Below are positions 39,116 through 64,000 of a stretch of 64,000 bases of DNA, piece after piece. Numbering within the stretch: the first letter of the stretch is position 1; each line of letters begins with the position of its first letter. Under the pieces are notes generated by a model. It worked only from the letters and a program-made list of their open reading frames with translations. It was not told where the DNA came from and made no database searches. The translations under genes and the position numbers were made by a program. Source of the stretch: Phaeosaccion multiseriatum (lineage: Eukaryota; Protista; Ochrophyta, other classes); contig OZ218951.1 in assembly GCA_965112735.1 (NCBI GenBank), forward strand, positions 1,302,001 to 1,366,000, read 5' to 3'.

Positions 39116-39150
<35 letters not shown>

Positions 39151-41076: not shown

Positions 41077-41118
<42 letters not shown>

Positions 41119-41489
41119 TCCTCCCCACCGCCCGCTGCAGACGACAACGGCATAGCTACTCCTCTCCTCCGACGGGGGAGAATTGTGGCGGTGCACGAGA
41201 CGTCGAGTGGTAACAGTGGCTCGAGAATAATGAGCGCCGATATCGAGTTCGAGGACGGGTCACAAGAGACAGTCGCAGAGGACAGTCTTGTTGGGCTGCC
41301 TGCAGGCTTCGGCTTGGGCTCGACCTCCAGGGGGGCAATGGAGACCCTTTCGCAGTCATTGTCTTCACCGGGCGGGGCACGAGGGGGAGCAGGAGGAGGA
41401 AACGGAGGAGGAGGACGAGAGCGGACGGTGGAGACCTCATCACCTCGGCACCGCTTTAGCATGGGCTCCCCGTCGGCAGCGGCGGGTGC

Positions 41490-41521
<32 letters not shown>

Positions 41522-44500
41522 CGGCAGGATCAGCTCACTCGCGCAGTAAGCAGGGCAGCAGCCGACGGGTATGGGTGGAGCACATCGAGGAGGGGTTGGC
41601 TGGGGACGAGGAGGAGCACATGGCAGCCGATGGAAAGTGCGCCGCCGGTGCAAGCCCTCGACCGACGCTGTGGCGACCGGCCACGGTGCTGGGAGTGGAG
41701 CGGGGGGGGAGCAGCGGGCGGAGGAGGACGTTGAATGCCCAACGCCTGTACCACTTGTGTGTGATGGTGGAAGACTTTGAGTTCACGAAGGAGGAGGGGG
41801 ATGATGGCGATGGTGGTGAGGCGGACCCACCCGGCGTCGACAGCAGCAGTGGCTATCCGGTGCGCGAGGTGAGTGAGCGGACCATCATCTTTGGGAATGA
41901 GATGCGGGGTGTGCTGGACTTTCCCACTACCGGCGGTGGCCGCGGTAGCAGTAGCAGCACCGCCAGCGGTAGCAGCGGTAGATTAGGGCTTGGAGGGGGG
42001 ACTTCTGGCGCTGCTTCTGCGTCTCTGATGTCTTCGTTGTCTTCGGGGGCATCATCTTCGTCGTCGTCATCATCATCCTCCGGGGTAGTTGGTGGTTCAG
42101 CAGCTTCAGCCTCAGCCTCCTCATCGGGCGTTGCTGGTCGGCAGAGACAGAGACGGCTACAAGGGGGGGGGAGGAGGAGGAGGAGGAAGCTCTTTCTCTC
42201 TGTCCCGATCACCATCGTCCAATGTGACAGCCGCGCAGAAGCAAGCGGACGCCTCCTCTCCGCGGGCATCAACTCGTGCAAGGATCAAGAGCTCGATGAT
42301 GGGGGTGCTCTCTCGCAGAAGGAGCGGTAGCATTGGAGGAGGGTCACCAGCAAAGTCAGGGGTGTCATCCTCATCAGCAGCAGGTGCGGCAGGTGTTGAT
42401 ACAGCGGCAGCAGCAGCAACGGCGACCGCAGAGAAGAAGGCTGGGGGGGTGCGAGGGAGGGAGGAGGGTAGCGCCCGTCTCTCCCGGCGGTTGGATCTGA
42501 TTCAACCCGAGCCTCTGACGCCACACAGCTGGCTGAGGTACCGCGTCAAGAGAGGAGGTCCCCTCGGCTTCTTACCAAGCCTGCTCTCTCCCACTAGCAC
42601 CACCACCTCCAGCAGCACAGTGAGTAGTACAGCGACAACAACCACGACCACGGCAAGAGTTAGCGGTCGGAGGGAAAGCTGGAAGAAGGATGGTTTGGGA
42701 GGGGGTAAGGGCAGATTGGGTCTGCGAAAACATCTCAGGGTGGGGGGAGGAGGAGGAAGAGGAGGAGACACAGGTCTGGGGGAGTTTGAGGAAGCCGAAC
42801 GAGACAGAGAGGGGGAGGAGGAGGAGGAGGAGGAGGAGGAGGAGGAATGGGAGGAGGGAGAAGGAGGGGGAGAGGAGGACGAAAAGGAAGATGATGATGA
42901 GGACGAGGACGAGGAGGAAGAGAGCGAGGAAGAGGAAGAGGAGGAGGAGGATGAGGATGAAGGATATATAGAGGAGAAGAATGACGGGGGTGGGTACGAC
43001 GGATTTGAGCTTGTCAACGACGGACAGGAAGAGGAGGAAGAGGAGGATGCTGAGATGAACGAAGAGGACGAGGAGGAGATGGGCCTGGAGGGTGGCAAAG
43101 AGGAGGAGGAGGAGGACGAGAAGGCAGCGGGCAGTCAGGCGACTGAGACACCGCCGGACGGGAAGGAACCTCCTGCTGACACGTCACCAGCCGGAGGGGA
43201 TGCACGACCACCGCAGGGCTCGGCAAAGACGTTCCTGGACCCAGAGTTGTCGCCGTCTGCAGCAAGATCAATGCGGAGTAGACGAGGGGCCGCCAGAACA
43301 GCAGCGGCTGTTGGTGATACGACAGCAAACCAGGAGGGGCCTGTCTTGGTGGTGGATGACGAGGGCGTGATGGCGCGGGAAGGTTGGCTCCACCCTCCGA
43401 TGTTGCAGCTGAAGCTGTCGACAGCAGGTCCTGACCCTCCTCCTCCTCGGACACGTGCAGATTCCGGCGGGGGTGCCCTCGCTCATCATCATCATTATCA
43501 GCAGCAGCAGCAAGTGGAGGAGGAGAATGACGGCGGCTGGCCTGTATTGCAGGAAGACGACACGGTACTGCATTGCATAACCAGGCTCCTGGCCAGTGCG
43601 AATGCGGCTCAGCAGCGGCAGAAGGAGCAGCGGGAGGAAGCTGCTGCTGAGGCCGAGGCAGGCGACGGGGCGGGAGGGGCAGCAGGGGTGGGTGGGGGGC
43701 GGCGTAGATTTCAAGGATTTGCCACCACCCGCGCGCTGCTTTTGAATGCGAGGAGGGGCTTCTTTGGCGACACAGGAGAGCACCAAGTGCTGTACTTCCG
43801 AGTGGAATTGGACTCCTCGGAGGGGAGTGGGGCAGACCTGATGGGCTCGGTAGGGAGGGCAAGCGGTGACGGAGGCGGACACACTACTGCTGCTGAGGCG
43901 AGTCTGGTGAGAGGGAGAGGGCGAGGAGGAGGAGGGGGAGGAAGAGGAGTGGTTTCTGCAGCAATGTGGGGAAGGGTGCACTTGCCATCTGTGAATAGCC
44001 TCGTGCAGCTCTCTCCCCGACTGGCGGACTCGCTACTGCTCTCGAGGGCCGTGAAAGGGCTGCTGGGAGGAGTCAGGAGCTCTAACGAAGAAGAAGTGCC
44101 AGGAGGAGGTGGTGTCAGTGATGTGGGCGTGAGGAGGAGGGCGTGGGACGACGCCAACCCGCCCCATTGGGTCAATGGAGCCCTTTCAGACGTGTTCGGT
44201 AACGCCATTTCGGACGTGCTTGCGGTGACGGCGGACTCGTTGCCCGCTTGGGTGGACGCGCTGGCCATGTGCGGCTTTGCCTTTCTCTTGCCCTTTGAGC
44301 TTCGCCTGCGCTACTTTTACAGCACCGCCTTTGGCGTGAGTCGTAGCGTGTCCTGGTTGCAGCAGCACCAGGCCAGGCTGCAGGAGCAGCAGTTGCAACA
44401 GCAGCAGCAGGGAGGGGGCGGAGGCTCCTCGGCCTCTGCTGCGGCCGCGGGACGGAGCCCTCGTCCCCAGGGGGGTGCCGGGGGAAGGAACGCTCGAGCT

Positions 44501-45441
44501 GGCCCGGCCCCTCCTCGAAAGGAGATTGTGACGGTACGTTCGTGTGTGCGTGCGTGTGCGTGTTTCCGTGTGTACGTGTGTGTGTGTGTGAAGCTGCTCT
44601 TCCCTGTTCTCCCCCCCTCCGCCCCTCTTTCCCCCGACACCCGCCGCTCCCTTTGTGACCCCGCTTCACACCCGTTGGCACTGCCTTGGGGGGGAGGAGA
44701 AGGGTCAGGGGGGCATGGGGGAGGACCTAACTTGATTGTTGAAGCGACCCACCACCACGACGTTTCTTCCGTCTGCTGCGCCGCCATAGCTTACTCCCCC
44801 CCTTCCCCTCTCCCCTCCTGTGATATACCCCCCTTGTATATTATATTTACACATCATGTTACATGATGATCGAACCAACCAACCAACCAACCAACCAACC
44901 AACGAACGAACGAACGAACACGATTGATTGCACGAAACAGGTGTCTCGCGACCACTTGCTCGAGCACGCCGAGCAAATCATGCACGCATACCGCTCCTCC
45001 AAGGCTGTTGTGGACTTTCGGTTCCACGGGGAGAAGGGGCTGGGGGCAGGCGTCACGGCGTCCTTCTACACGGCGGTGGCTGCCGAGTTGTACCGCCGAA
45101 GCGCCAACTGTGTTTGCCCCATGTGGGTGGACGAAGACCGTACCAAGGACCCGGAGGCCTTCCTTGCGCATCCCGTAGGCCTCTTTCCCCGCCCGGTCAT
45201 GGTGGTGTTACGCGACCAGGGTAGCCTGCTTGCAGGGCTAACAGGTGACGGGAGTGGTGGTGGTGGTGGTGGTGGCGGTGGGGTGTGTGGCTCTTCCTCT
45301 TGCTCCTCTGAGGAGCCGTTGGCGGTTCTGGCGCGCTTTCGTTTCCTGGGAAGGCTGGCAGGGAGGACTCTCCTGGATGGACAGGTACGAAACGGCCGAA
45401 ACGGCACAAGCAGAGCAGAGACATGTCCATCGGGGCTTTCC

Positions 45442-45476
<35 letters not shown>

Positions 45477-46700
45477 GTGGCTTTGCTTTCGTGGACGTGG
45501 CACCAAAGGGAGAGCTCTCCTGTCGACGTTGGTGGTATGCCCGCACATGTGCCTTTCTCTGATGTGTGTGTATATGTGTGGATGTGTATGTTTGCTTTGC
45601 TTTTCCCTTTTCCTTCTCTTTATGTAACCCTCCCTCCCCTGCCCTGCGATGCACAGGTGCTCCCTCTTCCCCTCTGTTTGGACTTCTTTGCCGTCGTCCT
45701 TCGCGTGGTGCGAGAGGATTTGCAGCAAGAGGCCATGGGTTGCCATCTGGAGGAGGAGGGGGAGGAGGAAGAGGAGGGGGAGGAGGGGGAGGAAAAAGAC
45801 GAGAGCGACGCCAGAGAGGGCAGTAGCAGCGGCAGCAGCAGTTGCAGAAAGGAGGCCTCAGACATGCCTTCTTTCGCCCACACGCTAGCGAAGGAGAGCT
45901 CAAGCTGGCTTCTGACCCCTGCCGACATGCCGAGGCTTTTCCTGCAGCCAGGACAACTCATGCTGGACCTGACCACGGCCTTGACGCAAGCAGGATCAGA
46001 AGGGAGGACCGCAAGCATGCAAGGCATGCCCCTGGAGGAGTGGTTGGAGGCCGCGTGCATCTCCATGGTCGACCCGCTGTCTGGGGTGTCATTGGGAGGG
46101 GAAGAGGACCCGTCGGGGGAGGACCCAGCAACCGTGGACATGGGCAATGTGGAGAGGTATGTGAGGAAGGTGCTTTCTTGTTGGCTTGGCGACGGAGTTC
46201 GAGCGGCGGTCACCTCCTTCCTGCAAGGGTGCGGGGAGGTGTTTCCGGTGCACAAGCTTGCGGCCTTCTCCTCGGCTGAGCTCAGGGCACAGCTTTGCGG
46301 AGAGGAGGTGGAGGAGTGGGACGAGGAGGAGCTTCACACGTTGGTGATACCCGGCGCCGGTTACACGCGCAACAGCGACCCTTACCGAGCTCTCCTCGCT
46401 TACCTTGCCCGCACCACAGCGGCGCAGAAGAAGGAGTTCCTGGCCTTTGTGTTGGGCTGTCCTCACCTGCCTCCGGGCGGGCTGGGAGCACTGAGCCCGC
46501 CTCTGGAAGTGAGTCGAAAGCTCACCTCTCCGCCGAGAGGAGGGGCGGCCTTTGCCGGACAGGAGGATGTGGACAGAGACTTGCCCTTTGCGCGCACGTG
46601 TACGCACACGCTGCACCTGCCGCCTTACACATCAGACTCGCTCCTGGTGCAGAGGTTGGAATTCGCCATGGGCAACAGCCAATGCATCGACAGAGAGTAG
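32168..46700 (+). CDS. Giant HECT E3 ubiquitin ligase, TRIP12/UPL3/HECTD1-like (~4,400 aa), with 2 RanBP2-type zinc fingers, ARM-like, ankyrin and Tudor-like regions
   Basis: Zinc fingers WSCSVCTYLN...CEMC and WICKACTMQN...CYMC. ARM-like YQELAQECMTGIELLS. Ankyrin LHQA...GADPN and LLAAGADPN. Pre-HECT LPFELRLRYFYSTAFGVSR. HECT motifs GEKGLGAGVTASFY, GLFPRP, FRFLGRL, LPPGGL and catalytic LPFARTCTHTLHLPPY. Introns at ~32603-32905, 33142-33411, 39961-40104, 44534-44940 and 45385-45656. One frameshift at the G-run 42163-42171. Confidence 0.92.
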
Positions 46701-47065: not shown

Positions 47066-50000
47066 CTAGAGGGATACATCGAATCTATCGGCATTCTTTG
47101 TCTCGCCAGGCTGATGCCCAGCAACGCTACTGCCACTCTGCCGCAGCAAAGACGCTCCTCCTCGGCGAGGGCTGCTTCTCTCTCGAACCACATGTCTCCT
47201 CGACCCCCTCCTGCCCATTTTGCAAAGATTTTGCTCTTCTTCTGCAGGGCCTCCGCCGCTGTCCAGCCCCGTTCCGTGATGACGCGGCGCAGCGAGCGCT
47301 CGGGAGGACAAGACGTGCTTTCTCAGCGGTATGCCCACCCACGCCACGTCTCCACGCTTTGAATTGGTGACACTTTCACCTCTCATGGCCATGCTCAGAT
47401 CACCAACATTTGCTCCTGCTTCAACGCGGCATCCAGGCTGCAAGTGAGCCCTTACTCCGAGCCACGCGTTCTCCCCGACTTGCACAGTCTTGAAGACGAA
47501 CCCTCCCGTGCCTTCGATGGTGTGCGCGAAGATTGTGGAGTCTTGCAACACCACCGCTGCGTCTCCAATGACGAGAAGATGCGCATCCTCAGGCCCGAGC
47601 CATAAAGATGTGTCCTTGCCAACACTTGCCCCCAGCAGCCGCAGCCACGCCGCGTACACCGGCCCGCCCGCGAAGTACTTGATGCAGAGAGCCTCTATCA
47701 AGGCCGGGCCCATGCTGCCCAAGCGGTATATATTCAGCGAAGGCGAATCGAGCGCTATCGGAGGCTGCCCCTCTCTGGCATGGAAGGATGTGCCCAGAAC
47801 TCGATGGAAAAGAATGGCTGAGCAAGCGCCTGCCAAGGCCATGAGAACTTGAAAGACGAAGCTCCCCAACACAAGAAAGAACACTCCAGTATGGCTCTCG
47901 CTCAGAGTATCCTTCGCCACCACTTCCGGAAGGACGAAGGGACAGAAGGCGGCAGCCGCATGCACATGGCCATTGCGCAGCAGCAGGTCAGATGCCCACG
48001 CGCTGATCAGCACCCCCGGACACCATACGCCGAGGAGCAGCACCACAGTCGCAAGCCCACGGAGCGCATTGTGCGCCCTCGACGGAACAGGAAGACTGGT
48101 TGCTGCATCGACGCCATCCTTCTCAGCAGCAGCACTCACTGGGTTCGGCAATACAAACGGCCGAGGTGCGCCCACTACAGAAGAGTTGCACGGTACGTCG
48201 TCGTCTCCACTCACAACGGTGCGATCTGCGACCGTGCTTCCGTCCCCAATGCAAGCTCCGCCTAGGAGAAGAGCTTCGTTCGCAACAATGCTGAAGCGGC
48301 CGATTGTGATGCTTTGCGTATCCTCGTCTCCACGGGCACCCCTTTCAGCGAAAAGGTGCACACGGCCCGCGAGCTGGGAGTTTTCCCCTATCCTGAGCTT
48401 CTCCCATATCGTAGTGATAGGAAGGGTAAGAAGTGCGCACCACTGCTCCAGGCTGGCGCCCATGGCGGAAGCAAAAGCACGGTTGAGCCCACAGTGTTCC
48501 ACAATAAGGGAGCCAACCTTGAAGAGAGGACTCTCCTGAAGAACTGCGAGTGACAGCCGTGTGGTGGCGCCGGGGCCGAGCAGCAAGAATATACGCTGTA
48601 GCGACAGCACTGCCACCATGTACAGCATGCTTCCGATCAACAGCAGCACGGGGAATGCCAATGCACGAGCGAAGATGGAGACACTCTCCCCCGCGCCGTC
48701 GTCACCACCCCCACCGGCAAGCACAAGTATCCAGAGGGGCAGCAGGTACGACCCCAAGTTGGTCACTGAAAGCAGGGCCAAGGCACAAAGCTCTTTTCCT
48801 ATCCGCCGCAGCCCCTGCTCGCGTTCGACCTCTGCCAGCGGGCCAGAGAGTGACGAATGGCCGAGCGACGCGTACGGACCGAGCTCCATCCCCTCGCCGA
48901 TGACCAAGTCCTTTGGCTCCTCATTCAGGCCCTCCTCCTCCTCCTGCTGCGTCTGCCCCCCCTCCCAGGGAGACGGACACACGTTGGACAGTATGCCCAC
49001 CTTTGCTCCCTTCCCGATCCTCACGCGATGGACATGGAGCATGCCATTCCGAGTAATGACAGACGGGCGAATGACGGCTCCGTACTCGATCACGGCCTCT
49101 TCTCCAACCTCGATCAAGTCATGCTCGTGCAGCAGCCAGCTCTCTAAGCGCGCGCTTCCACTGATTCGTGCCCCCAGCAGGCGGTTCCACACCCGCAAGG
49201 CGAAGGTACCACGGAGAACAGAAATCAGCAGTGCGGCAAGTTTCAGCACATTCTGCACAGCATACCACCGCCAGTAGTACGAGCTCCTCACGGACCATCG
49301 CCCCGGTCGCATGCGGCCAAGCACAGTCCACTTCACCACTACAATCAGGGCAAGGACCCAGCTGACTGACACGACGACGAGGAGTGGCAGCCAAGAAAGA
49401 ATCGTCGTATTGCCGCGCCCTGCTCTACGTAGCAAGTACACGCCAACGAAGCTGGGAGAAAACCCGCCGCTGAGCACAGCAACAACGAGCAGCCAACTCA
49501 GAATCTGCAGCTTCACTTGCTTGCCAGTGCTGAGTCTCCTGTGCGTTTTCATCGCTTCCCCTCCTCCACCGACTGACCCCAAATCGCGCTCCTCGTCCTC
49601 CACTCGGGCTTCGCTTGCCGCCGACGACTTCTCCCCGCTCTCTCCTCTGCCTCCGCCCTCCTCCGCCGCACCAAGCACTGAAACCAACACTGAAAGTGCC
49701 GCAGCGGTTCGGTTCTGGAAGATCTGCATTACTGTCAGAGCCTGCAGGAGTCACACAGACACAGCAGGGTCAGCAACAAGAGCGAGACACAACATGAAAG
49801 TGCGTTGTGCTCAGAGTCACTCACCTCGAAGCCGGGCACCTCTGTCCGGATACGCGAAACCGCCTGAGCCGCACTCAACGAGGTGCCTCCTCCGGCGAAC
49901 AAGTCGTCATTGGCTCGCAGGTCCGGTCGCCCAACGGCCTCTCGCATAATGCCGAGCACTTGACGGGTGGTGTCGTCCATAGGTGCGTCATCGCTGACGC

Positions 50001-53000
50001 CTAGGCTCCGCTGCCTGCCAGGACTACCATGATGTGTCGCTCGGATGACTCTGAGAACCTCTTTCACGTCTCGCTTCCCGCTACTCGTCATCGGCAGGGC
50101 ATCCACGGCCACAGCCTTGCTCGGCACCATGTATGCCGGCAGCAGCTTGCTCACTCCTTGCAGAACCATCTCAACTTTGGCACTAGAAGGTGTCAGAGCC
50201 GCCACAACCGTCTCGCGCTCTCTGTCCACGGCTGCCACAGCGCTCCTCACCCCCTCTTGATGGAGCAACGCAGCCTCCACCTCGCCCAGCTCAATGCGAT
50301 AGCCGCGCACCTTCACTTGAGAGTCTCGGCGACCCCTAAACACCAGCGATCCGTCTGCCAGCTGCCGCACCAAGTCACCCTATCAGAATGTATTAAGTTT
50401 GAGACGCATCAGATCAGAAGAGTGCACAGGGCAACAGAGAGAACTACCTCCATCCCCCCCCCCCCCGTGCGTTTTCCGCTTTTCACTGCATGACAGGCCA
50501 AAAGCAAGCCAAATATACACACAACACACGCACACACAAAAAGCCGCACACCCACCACCATTTCCACTTACCGTACGATACACTCTGCACTGGTCCGTCA
50601 AGAAGGGCGCGGGGATGAAGGCCTTGGACGTGAGCTCTGGGCGATTCAAGTACCCACGCGCCAGCTGTCTCCCCCCAATGCACAGCTCGCCCTCCACGCC
50701 CTGAGGCACCAGCTGCAGACGCTTGTCCACCACATACACTTGCACGCCGACTCGAGGCTTGCCGATGACGAACCCACTCGACTGAGCCCTAGAGGAGTAC
50801 TCATGTGCGGTCACAGCAATAGTTGCCTCGGTTGGACCGTAGCTATTTACAAGGCGCAAACGGTGTCTCCACATGTCCACTTGGCCCTGCTTGATCGGCT
50901 CCCCAATCAACGCGACGGACCGTAAGGTGGCCTCCTTAGATCCATTGGTGATGTCTTCCGGTCGAAGCAGCGACAGCAGTGACGGGGTGCAGTACATGTC
51001 TGTTACCCTCAAAGACCGTATCACCTCCGGCAGGTCGTTCAGCATGGAGCCCTTCGCTGCCAGGCACAGCGTCGCCCCACACGACAACGGCCCAAACAGC
51101 GACGCCACAGACACATCAAATGTCAAAGCAGCACTCAGGAGCACACGAGAAGATGCCGTTATGGTCAGTTCCTCTTCGTAGAGAGTCGCCATGAAGCTGG
51201 CCGTGCTTCTGTGCTCAATCATCACGCCCTTTGGCCGGCCCGTACTACCGGACGTGTGAATCACGTACGCCATGTTCTCGCCCACGGCGTGGCACACAGG
51301 CTCGGCTGTACTCTCCACTTGCATCACAGCCAACACGTCCACACAGCTCACGTCTCCGACACGCCGCGCTAAGCTGGCATCGGCGGTTGCCAGCACCTCA
51401 GACTCGCCTACTGCCTTTTCCGTCGTCAGAACGACGCTCAGCCCGGCGTCTTGTGCGATCATCGACAGCCTTTCGTCAGGATGCTCGGGATCCAGGGGCA
51501 CGTACGCCGCCCCGGCCTTGAGCACGCCCAGCACTGTCACAACCGCCTCCACGCAGTCCCCAGCAATCAGCACCCCCACCAGGCACTCCGGCCCCACGCC
51601 CCTCCCCTGCAGCATGCATGCCACCGCATTCGCATGCCCATTCAACTCCCCGTAGCTCATCACCCGACCCGTCTCATACTCGTGCAGGGCTTCCTGCTCC
51701 GGACTGCGTGAGGCCATCTCTACGAAAGCCGCGTGCAGAAGGGGGGGTGGTGGTGATGCTTCCTCTGCACCTCCCTCCTCATCTCCATTGGCATCCCCCG
51801 CCACCAGTGCAGCGCCGCTCAACGTCTCCACCACCTTCACACGGTCCTCGTGTGCCAAGATACTCAGCTTCCACACGCTCTCGCCCGGCCTGCCCACTGC
51901 ACTCTCCAGCAGCGCCAGGAAGCTCCGCCCCAGGGTTTCCACTGTAGCCTGGTCGAACACCGCCGTATTGTAGCACAGGCTGCCGTGCATGTCCGACGCA
52001 CTGTCCGTGCTGCGCACAAGGTATAGCTCGATATCAGTCGCATTCTTCCAAGTATCCACACCCCCCTCCTGCAGAACAAAGAAGGCCTGCAGCGCGGTGC
52101 CACGATCATCTCTGCCCAGCTGGGCCCGCTCCACCACCTTGTGGAACGGTGCCTCGGCATGCTTCATGGCACCCAGATACGCGACCTGTACGCGAAGCAG
52201 CACCTCCCGAAAGCTGGGGCTTCCTCCCAGGCCCAGACGGAACGCGAGGGTGTTGACGAAGCATCCCAGCACTCCTTCCAGGCCTTGCGCCACGTCTCTT
52301 CCGAAGTGCGCAGTGCCCACCATCACATCCTCTGTGGCACATACACGAGCCAGCAGCACTTGGAACGCGCCCATGAGCCCCACGAACAGTGTAGCGGAGC
52401 TGCCCGCGCACAGCTTACTTAACTTGGCCACCACTGCACTGGGTAGCACCAAGTCCACCTTTCCGCTTCCTCTCTCTTGGATGCCTTCATTCACCATTGC
52501 TCCACTAAGGCCTCGTTGGTCATGCGTCCGATCGAGGGGCAGCTGCAGGGGAGTGGTACCAGCTAGCTGACCCTCCCAGTATTCAAGCAGCTCCTCGATA
52601 CTGCCTTCGTCGTCCAAGCGAACGCGTTGCCACCTGGAGTAGTCCGCGAAGCTGAAAGGCAGAGCCGGTAGGTCTTGTGCAAAGCCTTGCCCGGCCATGA
52701 CAGCCGCGCACACCGCCTTGAACTCGGCGTTGAAGAGCAAGTAGCTTGCACCATCAAAGATGCCATGATGGAACGTAGATACTGCGGTATAGTGCTCCTC
52801 CTCTCCGCTCTGCTTCGGGACGTGCACGACCAGCGTGCGCCACAGCGGCTGTCTCTGCTCCAAATCGAATGGACGAGCAATATCGGCCTCGATCAGGCTC
52901 CGAGCCGCATTAACGCTGCTGACTACGGCTGAAGAGAGACCAGCTGACACCACTTGAGCCGCCGTAATTCCAAGCTGAACCTGCCTCAGAGAGCCCTGCT

Positions 53001-56000
53001 TTGTCCACTCAAGCGCCGTCCGGAGCACGTCATGTCGCTCCACTATACTGCCTAACACTTGTGCTATCATGTCCACAATTTCAGCGGATGCTCGTCCGGA
53101 GATCAGCGAGACTGGCAGCGGCAGCACCACTGGGAGATTGTACACGCTCCCCCCCCCAGGGACAGTCGTCCGCAGTGCTACGTCTGAAAAATACATGTGC
53201 TCCTGCTGGTAAGCCGCGGGGGCGTCGGTATCCGAAGAGGACTGCAAGAGGGCCATGGAGCTGCCATTTGCCCCGGCCCCCGTTGTTTGATCGTCTTGCT
53301 CATTCAGCGGCCCCGAGTCGGCTCCCAGCACTTCCTCTTCGACCCATGCAGCCAGCGCCGTTACCGTTGGATACAAGAAGAGCACGTCGCTGGTCACATT
53401 CACCCCAAATCGAGACTGCAGCCGAGTACGCAGCTCCACTGTTGACAAAGAGTCAAGACCTGCTTCCATCAGAGGAGTGTTCGCGTCCAGCGCCTCCGCA
53501 CCTTTCCCTATGAGCTCCCTGGATACATCAAGCACCGCCAATCGCACTGCTTGTTGTCGCTCGCCAGGAGATAGTCTCGAGAGCTCCTCGCGCACTTCTT
53601 TGCTGAGCGCAATGCTGCTTGACGAGCCTGCTGCATCTGCTGCCACAAGATCTGCCAGTATCGGCACGCAACGGGATGCCCCCAAGCTGCCTGCAAACTT
53701 GCCCCAGTCCATGCCAGGCAGGACAGCCACATCACCCACGGACGCTGACGACATCGCAGCGGCATCTAAGGCAGCCATGCCCAGCTCAGCTGACACCGTG
53801 CCCACACCCGCAAGCTCCAACTGCTTTTGAACGATATCGAGCTGGGCGGCCATACCCACGTCTGCCCACGGCCCCCACTGCAATGACGTCCCTGCGAGCC
53901 CGAGGTGTCGCCTGTGCCGCATCAGCCCATCCACAGCCGTGTTCGCCGCAGCGTAGTTGGCCTGTCCAGCGTTACCCAGTACTCCGGCCATGGATGTGAA
54001 GCAAAAGAAGAAGTCAAGGCCAGGAGCGCGCCCCTCCTCCTTCGCCCAAGCCAACGAAAGCTCGTGCAAGTTCATCGCCCCCTGCACCTTCGGTCGGAAG
54101 ACGTTTGTCACACTCTCCGCCGTTTGCTCTCCCAACAGCTTATCATCCAGCACCCCGGCAGCATGCACCACGCCGCGCACAGGGGGCAGCAGAGGCAGCA
54201 CGCCCCCCAGGCAAGTCCAAAGTGCCTCAGCATCAGCAACATCACAAGTAGGAGTATGGATCAGCTCCACCTTGTTCCGAAGCTGCTGCCACTGTTCTGT
54301 CATGCTCTCGGCGACCTTCCCACTCCTCGACAGCAGCACCAGGTGACGAGCGCCCCTCGACGCGAGGTGCTGGGCCGTTACGAGGCCGAGAGCCCCCAGA
54401 CCGCCGCTGATGACGTACGTGCCATCGGACACCACTGGCACACCGTACGAGGGGTTGGTCAGCACCACCTTGCCGATGTGCTTCGCTTGGCTCATGTATA
54501 CCATGGCCTTTTGAGTATCCTCCCTCATGTCAAAGGGTATGGTCGGTAGGGGCTTCACATTGCCAGACATACAATCGTCAGCAAGACGCTGCAGCCCGCC
54601 ACTGATCCAGCCCGGCTCATGAGCTAGGAAGTCAGACTCAACCCTGCTATGCAGTGCCAGCAGCTCGTACCTCACATCGGGCCGGGCGGTGCGCAACTGC
54701 TCGTGACTCCACACGCCTCGCTTGCCGATGTCAACAAATGTACCACCCTCACTCAGCATGTCCAGCGAGAAGGGAATGTAGTCTTCGCTCAGAGAGTTGA
54801 GCACCACATCGACCTTCACCTCACCCATGGACTGCTTGAACGCCTCTGCGTCTCGCGATGACACAATGTGCTCCACTCCCAAGCTCCGGAGGAAGTCATG
54901 CTTCACAGCAGCACCGGCAGTAGCGTACACCTCTGCGCCGACCCGCTGAGCATACTGTACGGCAGCAAGGCCCACACCGCCCGACGCGGCGTGAATCAGA
55001 ACCTTCTCTCCAGCCTCGAGGCCCTCAAGAGCCTTCATCACGGTGAGGAACACGGTGGGAAGTGCAGCGGCCTGCTCGAAGCTCAGCACGGCCGGCATCA
55101 CGGCCAGACACACATCACTCGTCTTCATATGACTGCGCAAACATCCTCTGTCCGCAAAGCCAAACACTGCGTCGCCGACACTGAAGGAAGACTTTCCTTC
55201 CACACTGATCACTTCGCCGGCGAAGTCGGAGCAGGGATCTCCAGGGTCGCCACCAGGATACATGTCGAGCACATTCAGCACGTCCCGGAAGTTAAGGCCA
55301 ACAGCCCTCACTACCACCTCCACATAGCTGCCAGTCGGGGCCAGAGGCCGATGTTTGCCAACATCAACATCATCGCAGAGGAGAAAGGCGTTGGTTATAC
55401 TACCTCTTGCCTTAAGCTCCAGGGAAAACGGAAGAGTCAAAGCTGGGTGTGCAAGCTGAGGCGTCCAGCACTGCTCATCGTGTACCCACACATCTTCTGT
55501 GGTGCCAGAGAAGGCCAAGCCTAAGGCAAGCTCGCTGTCTGAGGGCTCCTTATCGCTCAGGTCCACCACGCCAATCTGCATGGAGGGGTGCTCCATCCTC
55601 GCAGTCCGCACCAGCCCAGTAACCCAGCTGTGACGCCAGTCCTCGCCACTTTGAACGCCTCTCGTCAAGACAGTCAGCGGTACACTCGACGTAGTGGACA
55701 AGCTCCTGAGTAGAGTCATCAGGGCGTAGGCCGCTCGTGCTTGCTGGCCCCCTTCTGCGTCTTCTTCGCCAGCTCCGGGTATCAGCACGTACAAGACTCG
55801 AGTCCACTCGCCCTCTCCAAGAAGACGAGTACCATCATCCCACGAGGCGTCCATCCCCCCATACTGAGTGTGCACGTGCACGTGCACGTTCTCCGGAACA
55901 CAACGCCGCACTGCAGCAATGATTGCAGTCTCTCCTTCCCTCTCGTCCTGTGGAATAACCACCAGCCACTTCTGTGGCGCCGCCGCCTCAGTAGGGTCAG

Positions 56001-59000
56001 TATCACTACCAGGGGCCTCCTCCTGTGCAGACGGTTCAGCAACATGCCACTCCAATGCGTACATTGCACGACGAACGGGGCTGACGCGCACAAAGCCCCT
56101 CGCCCGCTGCACACGGAAGCCCCGCATCTCCACGAGCACCTCTTTGCTGTCGAAGTCTGCAATCACCACATCGAACTTTGCGCTGTCCGCCACTGACTGG
56201 ACCTCACTCAGCACCGTGTGCACCCACACGTTCTTTCCCGTCATGGAGGCGGAAACGACCACCTCGTCAAAGCCAGCAGGTAGGAATGGAGAGCCCCTCC
56301 TTTCCTTGAGCAGTTTCCTTGGCAGCGCTTGCATGATGGTGTGGGTAGCATTCTCCAGCACCGCGGGGTGCAGAGCAAAGCCCTTCATCTCCCACGGCTC
56401 GCACAGCTCCTCATCCATGGCACAAACGACCGACAGAGCCTCTCCGTCCCCTCCGTACATGTGGCGGGTCCGCTGAAAGCGGGGGCCGTACTGGAAACCG
56501 GCGTCTACGAATGACTTGTAGACCTCACTCGATACGTCATGCTCGCCAACTCTAGCTCGAATGGATTCCACGTGCAGCGAAGCACGCGCCGCGCTACGCT
56601 CCAAGACAGACACGTGCTTCATTCTTGCCATGGTGCCCTTGTCGCCCGTAGCACCTCCGAAGAACTGCCATCTGCCGCGTGAAGGGCACTCATCCCTGCA
56701 CAGACCATTGTATGGCGGTTTTGCGTCTTGTCCGTGCCGGCCTGTTGGAAACCCTCAATCTCCAGTGGAACCACAAAGCTGGCTCCTTGCAGGACTACTT
56801 GCTGTTCCACCCCGAGCTGTCTTCCTCCTAGAGCAGCGACGACGCCCACTTCAATGTACGTCACCTCCGGGATGATCACCACATTATTGACGGCATGGTC
56901 CTTGAGAAGGTCCTTGAGGTGAGGGGAGAAGGGGCTGGGGAGCCGCATTCCGTCTCCCTCCTGGACCACCTCGCCACTCGGCATAAAGGCCAGCGGAGGC
57001 TTGTACCAAGGAAATGATCGGCGAGTCGGACAAAGCTCAAGATGCTCCGGCCCCGCTATACTGCCCAGGGCTGCTCCAAACGAATCCTCAGAGCTCTTCC
57101 CGCGCGTGAGGGAGGAGATCCACGCCAGCCCCTCGCGACGCTCGCACTTGGCTCCCATGTTGCTCAGCACAGGGTTAGGGCCCACCTCAACGACGCTCAG
57201 GCCAGCCCCCCTCCCGTCTCCCATCCAGTGCTCCACCACCGTATGGATGCCTTCCGCGAACAGCACTGGCGACAGCATGTGTTGCACCCAATACTTCGCC
57301 TGCGTCACCTCCTCCTCTCTCACCACCTCACCTGTCACGTTGGACACCAGCGGAATGCGTGGGGCACTGAATGACACCTGCCTCAGAACCTCCTCCAGCG
57401 CACGTACAGCGGGCTCCATCAGAGGAGAGTGGAAGGCGTGCGACACCTCCAGGGCCTTGCAGCCCACCCCATCTGCCGTGAGCTTCTCCACCACCTTATC
57501 CACAGCGCTGCGAGCTCCAGAGATCACGCTCGCCCTCGGTCCATTCGACGACGCCAACACCACCTCGCCTGCCCCCCCCGCGGCGTCGATGCTTGCCAAA
57601 GTCGCCTCCTTGCCTGCCCTCACTGCGAACATCACTCCTTTGCCCTCGGGGCAGGCCTGCATGGCGGCTCCTCTCTTGGCGGACAGCATCAGCCCGTCCT
57701 CCAGCGACATGACGCCGGCCACGCACGCCGCCACCACCTCGCCCAGGCTGTGGCCCATCACCATGGACGGCTCCACGCCCTCCGACTTCCACAGCTCACA
57801 CAGGGCGTACTCCAGCACAAACAGGCACGGCTGGCAGTAGCGTGTCTCCTTCAGCAGCGCTTGTGCAGTCTCCTCCTCCTCCTCCTCCTCCTCCCCGTCC
57901 TCAGCGGCGGCAGGGTACATGAGCTCCACCACAGACTTGTCCAGCCAAGCCCGCTCCATGAGCAGCGTACTGCACCGCTGCACGCACTCGCGGAACACGC
58001 CCTCCTTCTCGTACAGCTCTCTGCCCATGCCCACGTACTGCGAGCCCTGTCCAGTGAACAAGAACGCCACCGGTGAAATGAAAACCTTCTTGCTTTGCTG
58101 CCCATCCAGCTGCAGCAAGACCTCACCCCTCTCAACCAACGTTGGTCCGAAGCTACTGAGCACCGCGTGGGCGTTGGTGCCTCCAAATCCGAAGGAGCTC
58201 ACCCCGACCACCACAGATCCATCGGAGTTGGTGGGTAAAGGGGTCATGGAAGATGGGAACAGGACTGCACTTCCCTCCATGTCGAGCTCTGGATTTTGCT
58301 CAATGAAGTGAAGATTGGGTGGAGCCGTCTTGTGCTGCGCCACCAGGACGGCTTTGATGAGTCCGGCAATCCCTGCCGCTCCCTCCAAGTGCCCGATGTT
58401 TGTCTTGAGCGCCCCTACAATCAAAGGCTTCCCTTCATCGCGGTCGTGGGCGAACACTCCTCTGAGAGCGCTCATCTCGATGGGGTCGCCGAGCGACGTG
58501 CCCGTGCCGTGTGCCTCCACGAAGCCAACGTCGTTTGGAGATAGCCCAGCATCAATCAAGGCGTCTGTGATGAGCTGCTTTTGAGCACCAGGGTTTGGAG
58601 CCGTCATCCGCGCGGTGGGCCCATTATGGTTCACAGCCGAGCCTCGCAGGACAGCCAGCACCTCATCGTCGTTGGTAAGGGCGTCGTCTAGGCGCTTCAA
58701 CACGATTGCTCCGCACCCCTCGCCTCTGACGTAGCCGTTGGCGGACTTGTCAAACGTTTTGCAGTGCCTTGAGAGCGAGGACAGAAGGGGGAAACAGGGA
58801 AGATTTAGCAAGAAGACAGGAGGAGAAGGGCGATTCAAGGTTCTCACTCTGCCTTATTGAACAAAGCAGTGGTGCGTGACCAGGTGCCTACCGACTACCT
58901 TATCGGGCCTTCACCTGCAGAGCATCATACTCATTAACTTCCTCCCCTCCCTCCCTCCCTCCCTCCCTCTTCTCTTTCCTTCCTCCCTGCTCCCCCCCCC

Positions 59001-62000
59001 CCTCTCCTCCTCCCTCACGCACACTCACGCACTCACCCGTCTGGCGAGAGAAACCCTCCTGAGGAAAGGAGCTTGAAGGGCGCCTCGCTGAGAAGCAGGT
59101 TCACTCCACCGACCACAGCTGTGTCACACTTGCCCAATCGCAGGCTGCTGCAGGCGTTGTCAAGGGCGACCAAGGAAGAGGAGCACGCCGTATCTACAGT
59201 TGAGCTGGGCCCCTTCAACCCCAGCGCGTAGGAAACTCGGTTGGCCAAATTCGACATGGAGGCTCCTGACGCCGCCTACACGCCCTCGCTCGCCTCGCCA
59301 GCTCCTTGGCTTGCTTTGGCCTGCAGCCAATCGCTTCCAGCGCAGCCGATGAAGACCCCTGTCTCGCTCTTGCGGAGACTGCTCTTGTCACAGCCTGCCC
59401 TGTGCAGCGCCTCGAAGGCCACCTCCAGCAGCACGCGCTGGTTGGGGTCCATGCTTTCCGTTTCCGCGGACGAAATGCCAAAGAAGGCGTTGTCGAAGAG
59501 GTGGACGCCCTCTATGAAGCCTCCTCGCCACTCTTTAGAGCCGCTTCCCCACCTGTCTCCTGGAGCTGTGGAGATGCAGTTCGATCCCGTGCAAAGCATG
59601 CTCCAGAAACCTTGGGGCGAAGTCACTCCTCCTGGAAAGCGGCACGCCATGCCCACCACCGCCAGCGGAGCTCGCATGCTTTGAGGCGAAGCCGAGGTGG
59701 AGCGCAAATCTCGCATTGGGTCTATGGCGGCCCTTCCCAGTACCTCGCCATCCAACCAGCCCACCAGCTCCGCCAAGCTGGGGTACTCAAAGAGCACATC
59801 GGCGGTGGCTGTCACCCCCAAGTCAGCGTGAAGGCGATTCCGCACCTCCACGAGTGCCATCGAATCCAGGCCTGCCTCCATCAAGGGCACATTGTCCTCC
59901 AGCGGGGGCATGTCTGCATCAACACACTTCAGCACGGTCGCCTTGAGCGCTTCCAGGAGAGCAACGCGTCGATCCTCTGGGGATTGCGCAAAGAGAGTCT
60001 TGCGCAGCTGTGAGAGGGCGTCTCCAGCTGGGAGAGAAGCAGATACAGGACCCTCGCAATCATGTGCTGGTGTTGCCCTCTTAGGGAGAGGAAACTCTCG
60101 CGACGCGGGGAAGCCCTGCCAAGGGGTGCCCACTCTCTCTGCTGCGCCTTTGGGCCTCATGCCGCCATAGCTTCCCAAGATGACGTGGGCGTTGAAGCCG
60201 CCAACGCCGTAGGAATTCACCCCTGCGAGCAGCGTCGAGCCGTCAGAGCAGTGGGAGGAGAGGGGCGTCCTTCGGGTGGGCAGCGTGACGGGCACGCCCT
60301 CCAGCTTCAGGTTGGGGTTGACCTCCTTCAGGTGTAGGTTGGCTGGGGCCTCTCGGTGTTGTACTACCAAGATGGCCTTGATAAGCTGAGCCATCCCTGA
60401 CGCCCCTTCCATGTGGCCTAGAGTAGTCTTGACAGTGCCCACTACAAGGGGGGATGCATCAGGCCTGTTGCGGGTGAACGCTGCCTTGAGAGCGCCTAAT
60501 GAGTATCACGCGACGTGCGTTCATGCGTGCGTGCGTGAGGGACGGAGAGAGAGAGAGAGAGAGGGAGGGAGGGAGGGAGGGAGGGAGGGAGAGGAGGGAG
60601 GGACGAGGGGAGGGCACGAATTATGCTTTGTTTATTATGTCTCATCACAGCATCAGTTTCCTAGTTGAGACGTAAGAGAGACATCACAATGATACTCCAA
60701 CACGCATGCCCCTCTTTAACCCCCTTTGCCTCCTTCAACTTGCCCAGTTCGATGGTGTCGCCCATGACCGTTCCCGTGGCGTGAGCCTCAACGTAGCCCA
60801 CTTCTCTCCCCTCGCACCCTGCCTGCCGCAGGGCGCTCTTCGCCAAGCTCTCTTGGGCGGCTCCCTTGGGGGCGGACAGAGAAGTGCTGACGCCGTTGTG
60901 GCTGACAGCAGCCGCCTTGATGATGGCGAGGATGTTGTCCCCGTCCTTGATGGCGTCCGGCAGGCACTTCAGCACGACGGCCCCGCTGCCCTCACTGCGC
61001 ACGTAGCCGTCCCCGGTCGCGTCAAAGGATTTGCAGTACCTGGAGCAGGATATGGGACACAGGAAGTAGAGTGGGGGGGGGGGTGGATCAGTGTCCAAGC
61101 AAGGGACCAGAGAGAAGAGAAAGGGCGCTTTGGAAGGAAGACTATAGATGCAGCAAGAGCTGCAGGAGCACACTCACACACTCACCCTTCCTTCGACAGA
61201 AGTCCCGCACTGGCCAGGCCGCCAAAGCCTTGGTCGTGGAGCAGCAGGTTGACCCCGCCAACAACGGCAGAGCTGCATTGCCTCAGTTTCAGACTGTTGC
61301 ACGCGTTGCTGAGGGCCACTAGGGCCGACGAACATGCTGCGTCTACGGTTTCGCATGCACCTACGAGGCCGAGCGTGTGCGAAATGCGGCCAGCGAAACA
61401 TGCTCTGCTTGCCCCTGCCAACGTGTAGGCGCTGAGAGAAATGCCATCCGCGCTCTCACGCAGTAATGCGGGCCAGTCACTCCCTGCAGCGCCCACAAAC
61501 ACGCCAACTCGGTGACCTTCAAGCCTGCGTCGGCCCTCGTAGCCGGCTCTGTGCAGAGCCTCGTACGCCACTTCGAGCATGATGCGCTGGTTGGGGTCCT
61601 GGGCCTCCGCCTCGGCGATGGACATACCGAAGAATGCGTTGTCGAACGCTTCAACACCGTCGATGAAGCCACCTGCTCGCATGACGGAGAGAGGAGAAGC
61701 GTCCAAAATGGGGTGAGTGGGGCGCAGATACAGGGAAAGAAGCGCCCAGCAAGGTTGTACATGCCCTGCAAAACAAACATCTGCAAGCCTCGTGAACACA
61801 GGGTAGAAACGCACCTCTCACTCCCCTTCCCAAGCCTCGCTCAAGGGGTGCATCGGTAACGCAATCCTCCTCCTTGCACAGCTTCACCCAGAGCTCTTCC
61901 GGGCTGTTGCAGCCACCGGGGAACCGACAGGCCATCCCAATGACTGCAATATCGCCGCTGCTTCCGTCAGAAGAAGGGGCTCCAGGAATGGAGCGAGGCA

Positions 62001-64000
62001 GTCCGTCAACAGAAGCGTCATCCTCCTCTCCTTCTCCAAACAGGACCGTCTCCAGGTGAGCTGCGAGTAGAGCTGGTGTCGGATAGTCAAAGAAGGCGTC
62101 GGGCCCAACCTCAAAATCCTTGTTGCTTCCGTTCTCGGTCTTCTCGCTGCCCAGAAAGTCCTCGAGCATCACCGCCAGCTCGGCCATCAATATCGACGTC
62201 ATGCCCGCCTCCATGAAGCGGTCGTCGGCGGTCAAATCTCCGTTGTGCGTCACCTCTACGGCAAACTCGAGGAGCTTCTCCAAGATGATGGCCACTCTTG
62301 CCTCCCTACCGAGGCTGTCCATAGCGCGAATGGCCAGACCGCCTTCTCGTCCTCCTCTCCACTCCGAGACATGGTCTTCGACGAAGCAAGCCCTTTCCTC
62401 CGGAGCTGAGCACACGCTGGCAAGGTTCACAGGAGGAGAGTCCTGTCGGGGTGGGTTGGGGGAGAAATGGGCATGACAAGTGGGGTGAGACTCGACGCAG
62501 AACCCTCAGCAGACGATTCTCTCACACAACTGCACGGTAAAAGGGCTGTGAAGGGCACACACGAAAGCACACAGATTGAAGGGGGCAAAGGATTGGAGAG
62601 ATAGGCAAGAGGCCTCCACTTCCGCTCACTCGCACCTGTGACATCGCAGTGCGGTCCTCGATGAGCTCGTGCACCATGTGCAGCTCGCCAGCGTGAAACG
62701 CCTGTCTCGTCGCCCGCCGTCGGATCTTGCCGCTCGTGGTCTTGGGGATGGTCTTCTGCTTGATGGCCACCACCTTCGCCGCTCTCAGACCCAAGGAGGA
62801 CGACAAGGCGGCTTGAGCAGCCTCTACCACTGCCGGGGCCTCGCCCTCTCGCTCCTGGCGGATCTCGAACACCACCTCCAGCACACCGTCCCCTCCCGTC
62901 TCGTCGGAAGAGAAGGCCGCAATGCAGCCCTGCCGAACGGCGCTGGAGGCCTCTTGCACAGCGAACTCGACGTCCTGCGGGTAGTGGTTGACCCCGTTGA
63001 AGATGATGAGGTCATTGATGCGGCCGCAGATGTACAGCAAACCCTCCTCCACAAACCCCACGTCGCCTGTCCGTAGGTACTGGCGAGGAGACGAGCTGTC
63101 ACTGCCCCCGGCCCCACCCTGGAGAGAGAGCTTCGCCTGGAACACCTCCTTCGACAGCTCGGGTTTGCCCCAGTACCCGGCGGCGGCAGAGGGGGAGGAG
63201 AACCAGATCTCTCCTGTGGCTGCTGCTCCGCTGGCCTCGGCCATGGTGTCGGGATTGACGATTCGAATGTCCATAAAGTCTGCTCTCTCGCTCGGGGAGC
63301 CGACGCTGGTAAGCTCTCGTCTCGAAGTGGAGCTGTGCCGAGAGTCGGTCCAGCAACCTGCTCCCAGCGAGGGCGCGAGAGAGGTCAGGGTAGATGAGTA
63401 TTCGCATCAAGAAACAAAGCAGGAGCTTGCTTGCGCAGCCAGCCAGCCCAAATGACCTGCGGTGAACTTTCCAAGTGGGCAGACGCACCTAATACCACGT
63501 GCTCTGCCAAACCGTAGGCCGCCGAGAACCACCTGACAGCGAAGGAAGAGAGCCAGCGAGACCACCACAACCTTCTGAGGATCTGAAACTGCACACTGCT
63601 TCCGGCTGAGCCTCACTACGCTGTACACGGCCAGGTAGTGCCATCAATGCAGCACCCACAGCTGAGTGCACATCACACTGCGAGACAGAGTATAGTACGC
63701 CAAGACGGCACGCCCTTCGACTCACCCGTCAGGGAGGCCGTGGGGGCGGAAGGCTCGCTCGAACCTCTCAATGGTCTCTCTCCGAATCGGCTCGGCGGAG
63801 CTACAAAGGGAGATGACATGTGACAAGTCGATAGACGGCTGCCTCTTGGTGCCGCGCACCTTGGCCATGTAGCGGGCGCAGAGGGCGTAGGCGAAGTCGG
63901 GGGCGACGGACCACTCCACGCAGTGCCGAGAGACAAGCTCCAGCCAGAGCAGGGGCCGCTTGATGAAGCTGACGGGGGACATGTAATGCATAGTCATGCC
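47066..64000 (-). CDS. Hybrid FAAL-PKS-NRPS megasynthetase with Pls/PosA-type membrane terminal domain: FAAL-ACP-KS-ACP-KS-AT-DH-ER-KR-ACP-C-A-PCP-(TM/LbH x3); 5' end beyond the window; in-frame TAG at 59276-59278 and frameshift near 56630-56720
   Basis: Nine phase-compatible introns join all ORFs from 64000 to the stop at 47066 (~15.3 kb exonic, ~5,100 aa in window). Motifs: [43 protein letters not shown]; ACPs GMTS, GLDS, GLDS; KS DAACSS/EAHATG/GHME and DTACSS/EAHGTG/GHLE; AT GHSLG and HAFH; [10 protein letters not shown]; [17 protein letters not shown]; C HHGIFDG; [21 protein letters not shown]; PCP GGTS. Confidence 0.93.
47330..49510 (-). other. Pls/PosA-like NRPS terminal region: paired TM helices alternating with three left-handed beta-helix (acetyltransferase-like) domains
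   Basis: [15 protein letters not shown]....[15 protein letters not shown]...HDLIEVG; AMGASL...LRIGENS...ITIGRFS..VVGAP; [10 protein letters not shown]...LLVIGD...AHTIEG...VQVG...WVGIP. Confidence 0.85.
49690..53230 (-). other. NRPS module: C-A-PCP
   Basis: C domain [24 protein letters not shown]-domain core motifs. [14 protein letters not shown]. Confidence 0.9.
53330..59668 (-). other. PKS module 2: KS-AT(malonyl)-DH-ER-KR(B-type)-ACP
   Basis: AT HAFH (malonyl signature). [12 protein letters not shown] and [21 protein letters not shown] and catalytic Tyr. ACP GLDSL. Confidence 0.88.
59738..61953 (-). other. PKS module 1: KS-ACP with no AT or reductive domains
   Basis: KS 61953-60173 with an intact Cys-His-His triad, a ~70-aa linker, then ACP 59962-59738 (GLDS). 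Confidence 0.88.
62660..64000 (-). other. Domain: fatty acyl-AMP ligase (FAAL) loading domain, N-terminal part off-window
   Basis: [78 protein letters not shown]. It is followed by an ACP (62289-62041). Confidence 0.85.

Follow-up and report, generated by a model that had tools for sequence, protein, structure and literature searches.

A polyketide synthase-nonribosomal peptide synthetase gene of an ochrophyte alga, primed by a fatty acyl-AMP ligase, ends in a predicted Pls/PosA-type membrane domain

The product of an assembly line is decided by chain release, for which the known devices are thioesterase (TE) domains, reductase (R) domains, terminal condensation (C) domains, and a few others. 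To our knowledge, the products of algal type I lines that combine polyketide synthase (PKS) with nonribosomal peptide synthetase (NRPS) modules are almost entirely unknown. In bacteria, hybrid PKS-NRPS lipopeptide lines primed by fatty acyl-AMP ligase (FAAL) load a fatty acid through FAAL-ACP, extend it by type I PKS modules, and use a C domain to N-acylate an amino acid. PosA, the delta-poly-L-ornithine synthetase of Acinetobacter baumannii, and Pls, the epsilon-poly-L-lysine synthetase of Streptomyces albulus, are single proteins of ~1,300 residues consisting of an adenylation (A) domain, a carrier (T) domain, and a shared C-terminal domain of ~730 residues. They have no C domain, they take diamino acids by means of an Asp and a Glu, and their products are isopeptide-linked homopolymers. 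The shared domain has three transmembrane (TM) pairs and three left-handed beta-helix (LbH) domains, and its donor is a carrier thioester. Here, we describe a gene that joins elements of both kinds of system. It lies on the minus strand of a 64,000-nucleotide stretch of the ochrophyte Phaeosaccion multiseriatum (GenBank assembly GCA_965112735.1, contig OZ218951.1, positions 1,302,001 to 1,366,000), which we call the window.

In the end domain of Pls and PosA, three pairs of TM helices are laid out with soluble stretches (PMC10522769), and the side-chain amine of a free acceptor attacks the aminoacyl thioester on the carrier (Yamanaka 2008, according to PMC10522769). The Glu, at position 3 of the A-domain specificity code, is conserved in all such synthetases, is essential in PosA, and binds the side-chain amine (PMC10522769). 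The proteins dealt with in papers about these two synthetases have 1,100 to 1,800 residues, and lower eukaryotes are named there just in passing.

The gene model was built from Pfam and NCBIfam domain scans and from the long open segments in three frames, with every junction read by eye. The gene runs from position 64000, the window end, where its 5' part is cut, to a stop codon at 47066-47068. Its 10 exons are separated by 9 introns, each 83 to 269 bases long, of which eight are GT-AG and one is GC-AG, and the spliced translation comprises 5,114 residues with an X at each of two frame breaks. Pfam and NCBIfam matches give the domain order FAAL-ACP-KS-ACP-KS-AT-DH-ER-KR-ACP-C-A-PCP, followed by a Pls/PosA-type TM/LbH terminus. 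One nuclear, intron-containing gene encodes an assembly line of more than 5,100 residues, with the modules FAAL-ACP, KS-ACP, KS-AT-DH-ER-KR-ACP, and C-A-PCP. A single spliced gene with this order had been proposed in a first-pass annotation made from the sequence alone, and it is borne out by the domain matches, by read-supported introns, and by collinearity with a homologue from Chrysoparadoxa australica.

No catalytic motif is missing from the spliced translation across the KS, AT, C, A, and carrier domains. The serine is kept in all four carrier domains, and the core motifs A3, A7, A8, and A10 are all present in the A domain, whose motifs include PMTSSGK. The N-terminal third of the FAAL lies beyond the window; in the remainder, FAAL hidden Markov models (HMMs) outrank CoA-ligase models. 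The best NCBIfam matches (NF009124/NF004509, E 2e-44; FadD32, E 3e-39) come ahead of those to fatty-acid-CoA ligases. The FAAL exons join without stops, a mini-exon carries the YGLAE motif, and an ACP follows directly. This ranking and the adjacent ACP support the earlier suggestion of FAAL priming. The first KS (KS1) has no AT after it and no reducing domains of its own. The His motif of the DH domain has Asn where Gly is usual, and we take the HAFH of the AT to be a malonyl-type motif. None of the exons has a match to the TE or R families (PF00975, PF07993), in agreement with the first reading; the Pls/PosA-type domain occupies that place.

The terminus is an 887-residue open reading frame (ORF) with a hexapeptide-repeat match and a match to TIGR02353 in three stretches (E 2e-39, under the family cut-off). 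Hydropathy indicates six TM helices arranged as three pairs, and each pair is followed by a soluble stretch of 173 to 183 residues. An AlphaFold2 model (pLDDT 85.7, pTM 0.90), for which 72 end domains were aligned, has three LbH units in one chain, which are predicted to pack as a pseudo-trimer. The top Foldseek match among Swiss-Prot models was PosA (residues 612-1330 against query residues 3-747; E 4.5e-26; TM score 0.71 by query). The remaining matches were single LbH acetyltransferases. Across the Foldseek searches, the matches for single LbH units included maltose, serine, and sugar N-acetyltransferases, LpxA, and GlmU. In the PDB, only single LbH units matched the end domain (GlmU, LpxA, CysE, and maltose acetyltransferase), and a sequence search of solved structures returned one hexapeptide transferase (E 0.005) and no Pls-type structure; none is known to have been solved. 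The His in FAHTIEG of the third LbH domain (C3) is shared by 70 of 71 relatives and by every fused form. Most of the near-invariant Gly, Lys, Arg, and Asp positions are likewise kept in the window protein and in all fused relatives. By HMM match, topology, and predicted fold, the terminus is of the Pls/PosA type, as the first-pass annotation had named it.

To read the substrate pocket, we aligned the A domain with those of seven ordinary A-T-Pls relatives and two fused relatives. The code positions were set by GrsA landmarks and then checked against the alignment. Derived by hand in this way, the specificity code reads D V A Y A I S I A K, in which the Asp at position 1 is the only acidic pocket residue. 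At position 3, the seven ordinary A-T-Pls relatives all have Glu (FDxSxEE), whereas the window protein has Ala, the Chrysoparadoxa homologue (P0003) has Met, and a Phalansterium protein (P0004) has Ser. The absence of the Glu is solid, and because the pocket has no further acidic residue, a diamino acid is an unlikely substrate.

Transcription and splicing were assessed with contigs of four public runs of the same organism (X1, X2, X4, and X8) aligned to 56550-62549. Contigs of X4 skip exactly 61673-61814 and 61040-61185, and this run has almost no depth inside introns. At intron 62443-62635, a loose end of X4 at 62446 carries on into the terminal part of the preceding exon. The GC-AG intron at 60496-60743 (donor GCAAGT) is skipped in all four runs, and its removal leaves the distance from IE to GTVK that is expected in a KS. 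Models of this intron with a GT donor at 60720 or 60739 were ruled out by the same reads. Four of the nine introns are thus seen as joints or loose ends. Since contigs skip introns and intronic depth in X4 is near zero, the locus is transcribed and spliced.

Toward the 3' end, introns 50380-50571 and 49742-49824 both have consensus ends. The membrane domain belongs to the same gene because these introns cut the A7 motif (between YRT and GD) and the PCP. At the C. australica locus (L001), a single uninterrupted tblastn alignment to composite residues 1824-4768 (3,037 columns, 37% identity) spans DH to the end domain, of which it takes in the first two LbH units (C1-C2). This homologue, in which the junction lies within one uninterrupted ORF, is independent support for the predicted fusion.

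Two introns contain low-complexity tracts, (CCCT)n/(CT)n in intron 6 (60512-60606) and a purine-rich mirror (GGGA)n in intron 7 (58933-59038), and both tracts were skipped as repeats in the read comparison. Over the AT (57150-58150), the summed contig depth in X1 and X2 exceeded that of the remaining gene by a factor of 10 to 30, and many variant letters occurred. The organism may therefore have several near-identical paralogues that carry an AT, or highly expressed relatives.

As assembled, the window copy contains a stop codon and a frameshift that the first-pass annotation had missed. The stop is an in-frame TAG at 59276-59278 in the second KS (KS2), aligned with a conserved Tyr of KS1. At position 59276, X1, X2, and X4 have G on the plus strand at full depth, so the coding strand has TAC (Tyr); X8 is without depth at this position. 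Over 641 bases, one contig of X4 (record 18) differs from the window at 59276 only. A short intron or a reassigned codon was ruled out at this place, given the alignment with a conserved Tyr and the TAC in the reads. The frameshift, at 56667/56668, falls within the first of the two hot-dog halves of DH. In X1, X2, and X8, loose ends at 56668 have seven extra letters that are absent from the window between 56667 and 56668. With these letters, both DH halves fall in one frame. A spliceosomal intron was rejected as the cause: all frame-compatible GT/GC..AG pairs were listed, and none had credible ends or kept the hot-dog fold. Both breaks are most likely assembly errors or confined to one allele, since neither is present in public reads of the same organism. 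About 65 single-letter differences separate the window from X1, X2, X8, and X4 in 6 kb, some common to all runs and others found in sample S1 only. They fit the presence of two haplotypes or strains that diverge by roughly 0.5-1%.

When 1.84 billion representatives were searched exhaustively with HMMER, the end domain had 1,125 relatives, the best at only 31% identity. Among the best 150 of the 1,125, only 3 have PKS or C domains: P0003, P0004 (with the architecture C-A-PCP-end domain), and P0069 from Stygiella incarcerata, all of them uncharacterized. The closest homologue is P0003 (CAM9397790.1); that it comes from an ochrophyte fits an ochrophyte origin of the gene, without proving it. Word-based searches for long fused relatives, using the P0003 and P0069 end domains, gave no further PKS- or C-containing proteins. 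The C-A region retrieved solely bacterial multimodular NRPSs and was uninformative. A single-protein search of metagenome contigs found no relative. An Atlas search pointed to many diatom fragments with a related domain, and the fused forms may be more widely spread than we found.

In a quick tree, the window end domain groups with that of Chrysoparadoxa (the two together at SH-aLRT 97) and with P0026, a metagenomic oxidase-carrier-LbH protein. It tentatively falls outside the large clade of ordinary A-T-Pls proteins, on a tree with long branches. P0026 (JGI metagenome, 2,149 residues) has two FAD amine-oxidase domains, two carrier domains, and a Pls/PosA-type end, with no A domain. A land-plant cluster around P0139 (Eucalyptus grandis XP_039159797.1 and relatives, with Tasmannia and Impatiens) consists of uncharacterized proteins of ~2,300 residues, in which an amine oxidase is followed by A, carrier, Pls/PosA-type TM/LbH, and catalase-like domains. 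Four bacterial A-T-Pls proteins (P0019, P0288, P0332, and P0333) have a 4'-phosphopantetheinyl transferase domain fused after the end domain.

We propose, with somewhat better than even confidence, that the end domain acts as the release domain of the line, transferring the N-acyl-aminoacyl chain once to an acceptor. The FAAL would adenylate a fatty acid and load it onto ACP1. Both KS modules would use the one malonyl-type AT and extend the chain by at most two C2 units, of which just the second would be fully reduced. If KS1 extends by way of the AT of module 2, a keto group would be left at C5 of the final acyl chain. About two ketide units had been suggested in the first reading; the number is plausible, although the first KS has neither AT nor reducing domains of its own. 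The C domain would then N-acylate a neutral amino acid on the PCP with the polyketide-extended fatty acid, an assignment made because a canonical C domain sits between ACP3 and A-PCP. The membrane LbH domain would stand in for the missing release domain, with an external nucleophile attacking the PCP thioester, as in Pls and PosA. Candidate acceptors are an amine, a hydroxyl, or water. One reaction per chain would yield a lipo-amino-acid conjugate at or across the membrane, and iterative growth is unlikely because the N-acylated donor would have no free amine.

A more general off-loading role is suggested because the end domain directly follows a PKS ACP in P0069, and in P0026 it follows carriers without an A domain. 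The Pls/PosA-type domain could be a general, hitherto unrecognized termination device, a membrane-embedded pseudo-trimeric LbH acyltransferase that passes whatever chain a carrier bears (polyketide, lipopeptide, or aminoacyl) to an acceptor at or across the membrane. Fused to varied upstream machineries in ochrophytes, a jakobid, an amoebozoan, and plants, it would make a family of lipo-amino-acid conjugates of the membrane or surface. We hold this wider reading as a tentative one, somewhat short of an even chance.

Several observations weigh against a releasing end domain in a working line of this kind. The TIGR02353 score (135.5 bits) is far under the curated cut-off of 423.1 bits, and four residues that are near invariant in the family are changed in the window protein (E656D, D658H, K583H, and W97Y). 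Both points would suit a mere membrane anchor or export channel without catalysis, with the chain released by spontaneous or trans-acting hydrolysis. We consider this quite unlikely, given the near-invariant residues that are kept, the C3 His among them, in the window protein and all fused relatives, and given that two algal lineages have conserved the fusion, at 36-37% identity. The lack of an AT after KS1 makes the number of extensions uncertain, and we know of no substrate that matches the hand-derived A-domain code. The end domain is also homologous to those of the polymerizing Pls and PosA, and nothing in the sequence forbids repeated loading of the PCP. An iterative end domain could then make a fatty-acyl-capped poly-amino-acid, with the N-acyl amino acid as primer or cap and A-PCP reloading repeatedly. 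A polymerase making a lipid-capped polyamide had been among the options of the first-pass annotation; it now appears unlikely. The code-position-3 Glu, found in all A-T-Pls relatives and essential in PosA (PMC10522769), is missing, and the C domain would acylate the alpha-amine, leaving no nucleophile for growth. The position of the end domain outside the main A-T-Pls clade points the same way, though the branches are long.

Other difficulties concern the gene itself. The transcript evidence spans 56750-62549, the 3' junctions rest on sequence logic and the homologue, and the type of three of the runs is not on record. The membrane domain could in principle be a separate LbH acyltransferase gene beside a release-less PKS-NRPS, the two joined only by the exon model, and introns 50380-50571 and 49742-49824 do lie outside the read-compared stretch. 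Such a split would halve the PCP at 49825 and cut the A domain at the A7 motif, despite the consensus ends of both introns; no ATG-initiated ORF spans a complete separate protein with its own carrier; and Chrysoparadoxa has the same junction within one uninterrupted ORF. We regard two genes as very improbable. The window copy is broken as assembled, and if the breaks are real in the assembled strain, it makes no full-length protein. It would then be a pseudogene, dead through the KS2 nonsense codon and a DH frame change for which no credible intron exists, with the intact reads coming from another allele, strain, or paralogue; the runs do differ from the window at ~1% of places in the compared stretch. 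This seems rather unlikely to us. The window letter at 59276 occurs in no run, and the X4 contig that contradicts it is otherwise identical over 641 bases. Elsewhere, the 15-kb reading frame stays open and keeps all of its catalytic motifs, and the locus is transcribed and spliced. A single transfer by the end domain of an intact, spliced gene is the reading that we keep, as a proposed function of a predicted domain.

The coordinates of the features are collected in Table 1. The convergent plus-strand neighbor is very large (33454-46700), with an ORF of 2,958 residues that has weak ankyrin-repeat matches and a HECT ubiquitin-ligase domain at 45423-46700. About 366 bases lie between its stop and that of the PKS-NRPS gene. 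There is no sign of a biosynthetic cluster beside the gene, where the adjacent gene is this ankyrin/HECT ubiquitin ligase.

Table 1. Features of the PKS-NRPS gene in window coordinates, in coding order
Feature	Position	Strand	Remarks
FAAL, middle and C-terminal parts	62636..64000	-	Exons 64000-63726, 63532-63489, 63357-62636; N-terminus past window end
ACP1 (Ser in GMTSI)	62053..62274	-	PF00550 E 7e-8; within exon 62442-61815
KS1 (Cys-His-His: DAACSS, HATGT, TLGH)	60164..61953	-	PF00109, PF02801; introns 61673-61814, 61040-61185, 60496-60743
ACP2 (GLDSM)	59753..59941	-	PF00550 E 2.5e-12
KS2 (Cys-His-His: DTACSS, HGTGT, NIGH)	58149..59668	-	PF00109, PF02801; intron 58768-59036
AT (GHSLG, HAFH)	57153..58064	-	PF00698 E 3e-51
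DH, two hot-dog halves	56101..56957	-	PF21089 and PF14765, in different frames
ER (GGVG)	54460..55323	-	PF08240, PF00107, PF13602
KR (GGLGALG)	53860..54423	-	PF08659 E 2e-58
ACP3 (GLDSL)	53341..53529	-	PF00550 E 3e-13
Condensation domain (HHGIFDG)	51844..53076	-	PF00668 E 2.5e-47
Adenylation domain	50074..51720	-	PF00501 E 2e-74, PF13193; intron 50380-50571 splits A7 motif between YRT and GD
PCP (GGTSL)	49690..49962	-	PF00550; intron 49742-49824 (GTGAGT..CAG), junction between VPGFE and ALTVMQIF
TM helix pair 1	49310..49516	-	Hydropathy peaks 1.8 and 2.9; helices in model
Soluble LbH domain C1	48791..49309	-	Best TIGR02353 stretch, residues 85-392; beta-helix strands in model
TM helix pair 2	48605..48790	-	Hydropathy, model
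Soluble LbH domain C2	48056..48604	-	Hexapeptide acetyltransferase model matches, residues 432-525; model
TM helix pair 3	47792..48055	-	Hydropathy, model
Soluble LbH domain C3	47261..47791	-	PF00132 E 8e-10; codon 47522-47524 encodes the near-invariant His of FAHTIEG
C-terminal tail of low complexity, with stop codon (47066-47068)	47066..47260	-	

If the proposed release function is true, a membrane-embedded LbH domain in the release position would represent a new logic of release, in which synthesis is coupled to the membrane. For the Pls/PosA domain, the role would widen from homopolymer formation to general acyl transfer from carrier proteins. The gene is transcribed and conserved between two ochrophyte lineages (~37% identity), and it offers a defined target for lipidomics, an N-acyl amino acid conjugate. 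The case also shows two apparent gene-killing assembly lesions that are absent from public reads.

Among the relatives, P0003 of Chrysoparadoxa is the nearest counterpart. It has the same order, (DH)-ER-KR-ACP-C-A-PCP-TM/LbH x3, at 36-37% identity over 2,300 to 3,000 residues; like the window protein, it lacks the Glu at code position 3, and it is uncharacterized. The annotated protein covers ER to the end domain, and the locus has no introns across 8.6 kb. Its contig ends 2 kb upstream of the annotated gene, before the FAAL/KS part. P0069 of S. incarcerata (EP01028_P005930, a transcript, uncharacterized) is a FAAL-primed PKS with two KS domains, a single AT, and the same TM/LbH end. Its order is FAAL-ACP-KS-AT-KR-ACP-KS-DH-ER-KR-ACP and then the end domain, with no C-A-PCP; its AT lies in the first module, not the second.

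Fusions of the FAAL-PKS and FAAL-NRPS kinds have been listed for diatoms, oomycetes, and other eukaryotes in a 2026 survey of FAALs, none with a Pls/PosA-type end (PMC12820801). In bacterial clusters that combine a polyunsaturated fatty acid (PUFA) synthase with PKS-NRPS genes, a lipid/polyketide line and a Pls/PosA-type domain occur together. There, according to a 2026 paper, the Pls/PosA-type NRPS gene (A-PCP-Cterm) is separate, unfused, and uncharacterized (PMC13291983). Our literature search found no paper pairing polylysine synthetase with algal terms and no characterized enzyme with the full architecture, so the novelty claimed in the first-pass annotation holds for the literature searched. 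The building blocks are known, namely, FAAL-primed PKS-NRPS lines and the Pls/PosA end; their fusion is undescribed in that literature.

Set against FAAL-primed hybrid type I PKS-NRPS lines, the window gene has the FAAL-ACP, the KS triads, the GHSxG of the AT, the reducing loop, the carrier serines, and the C and A motifs. Known lines of this kind end in TE, R, or terminal C, unlike the window gene, which lacks all three as a release domain. The hexapeptide acyltransferase fold of LbH proteins is present in its terminus, as judged from PF00132 (E 8e-10) and the Foldseek matches. Compared with Pls and PosA, the window domain terminates a FAAL-PKS-NRPS that exceeds 5,100 residues, has a canonical C domain, and lacks the code-position-3 Glu, and the sequence identity is about 20-25%. 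Four marks of the Pls/PosA family could be tested, and three of them (a score above the HMM cut-off, the architecture, and the Glu) are missing, whereas the fold and topology agree. The gene product would work like the end of Pls, yet it is probably not a poly-amino-acid synthetase.

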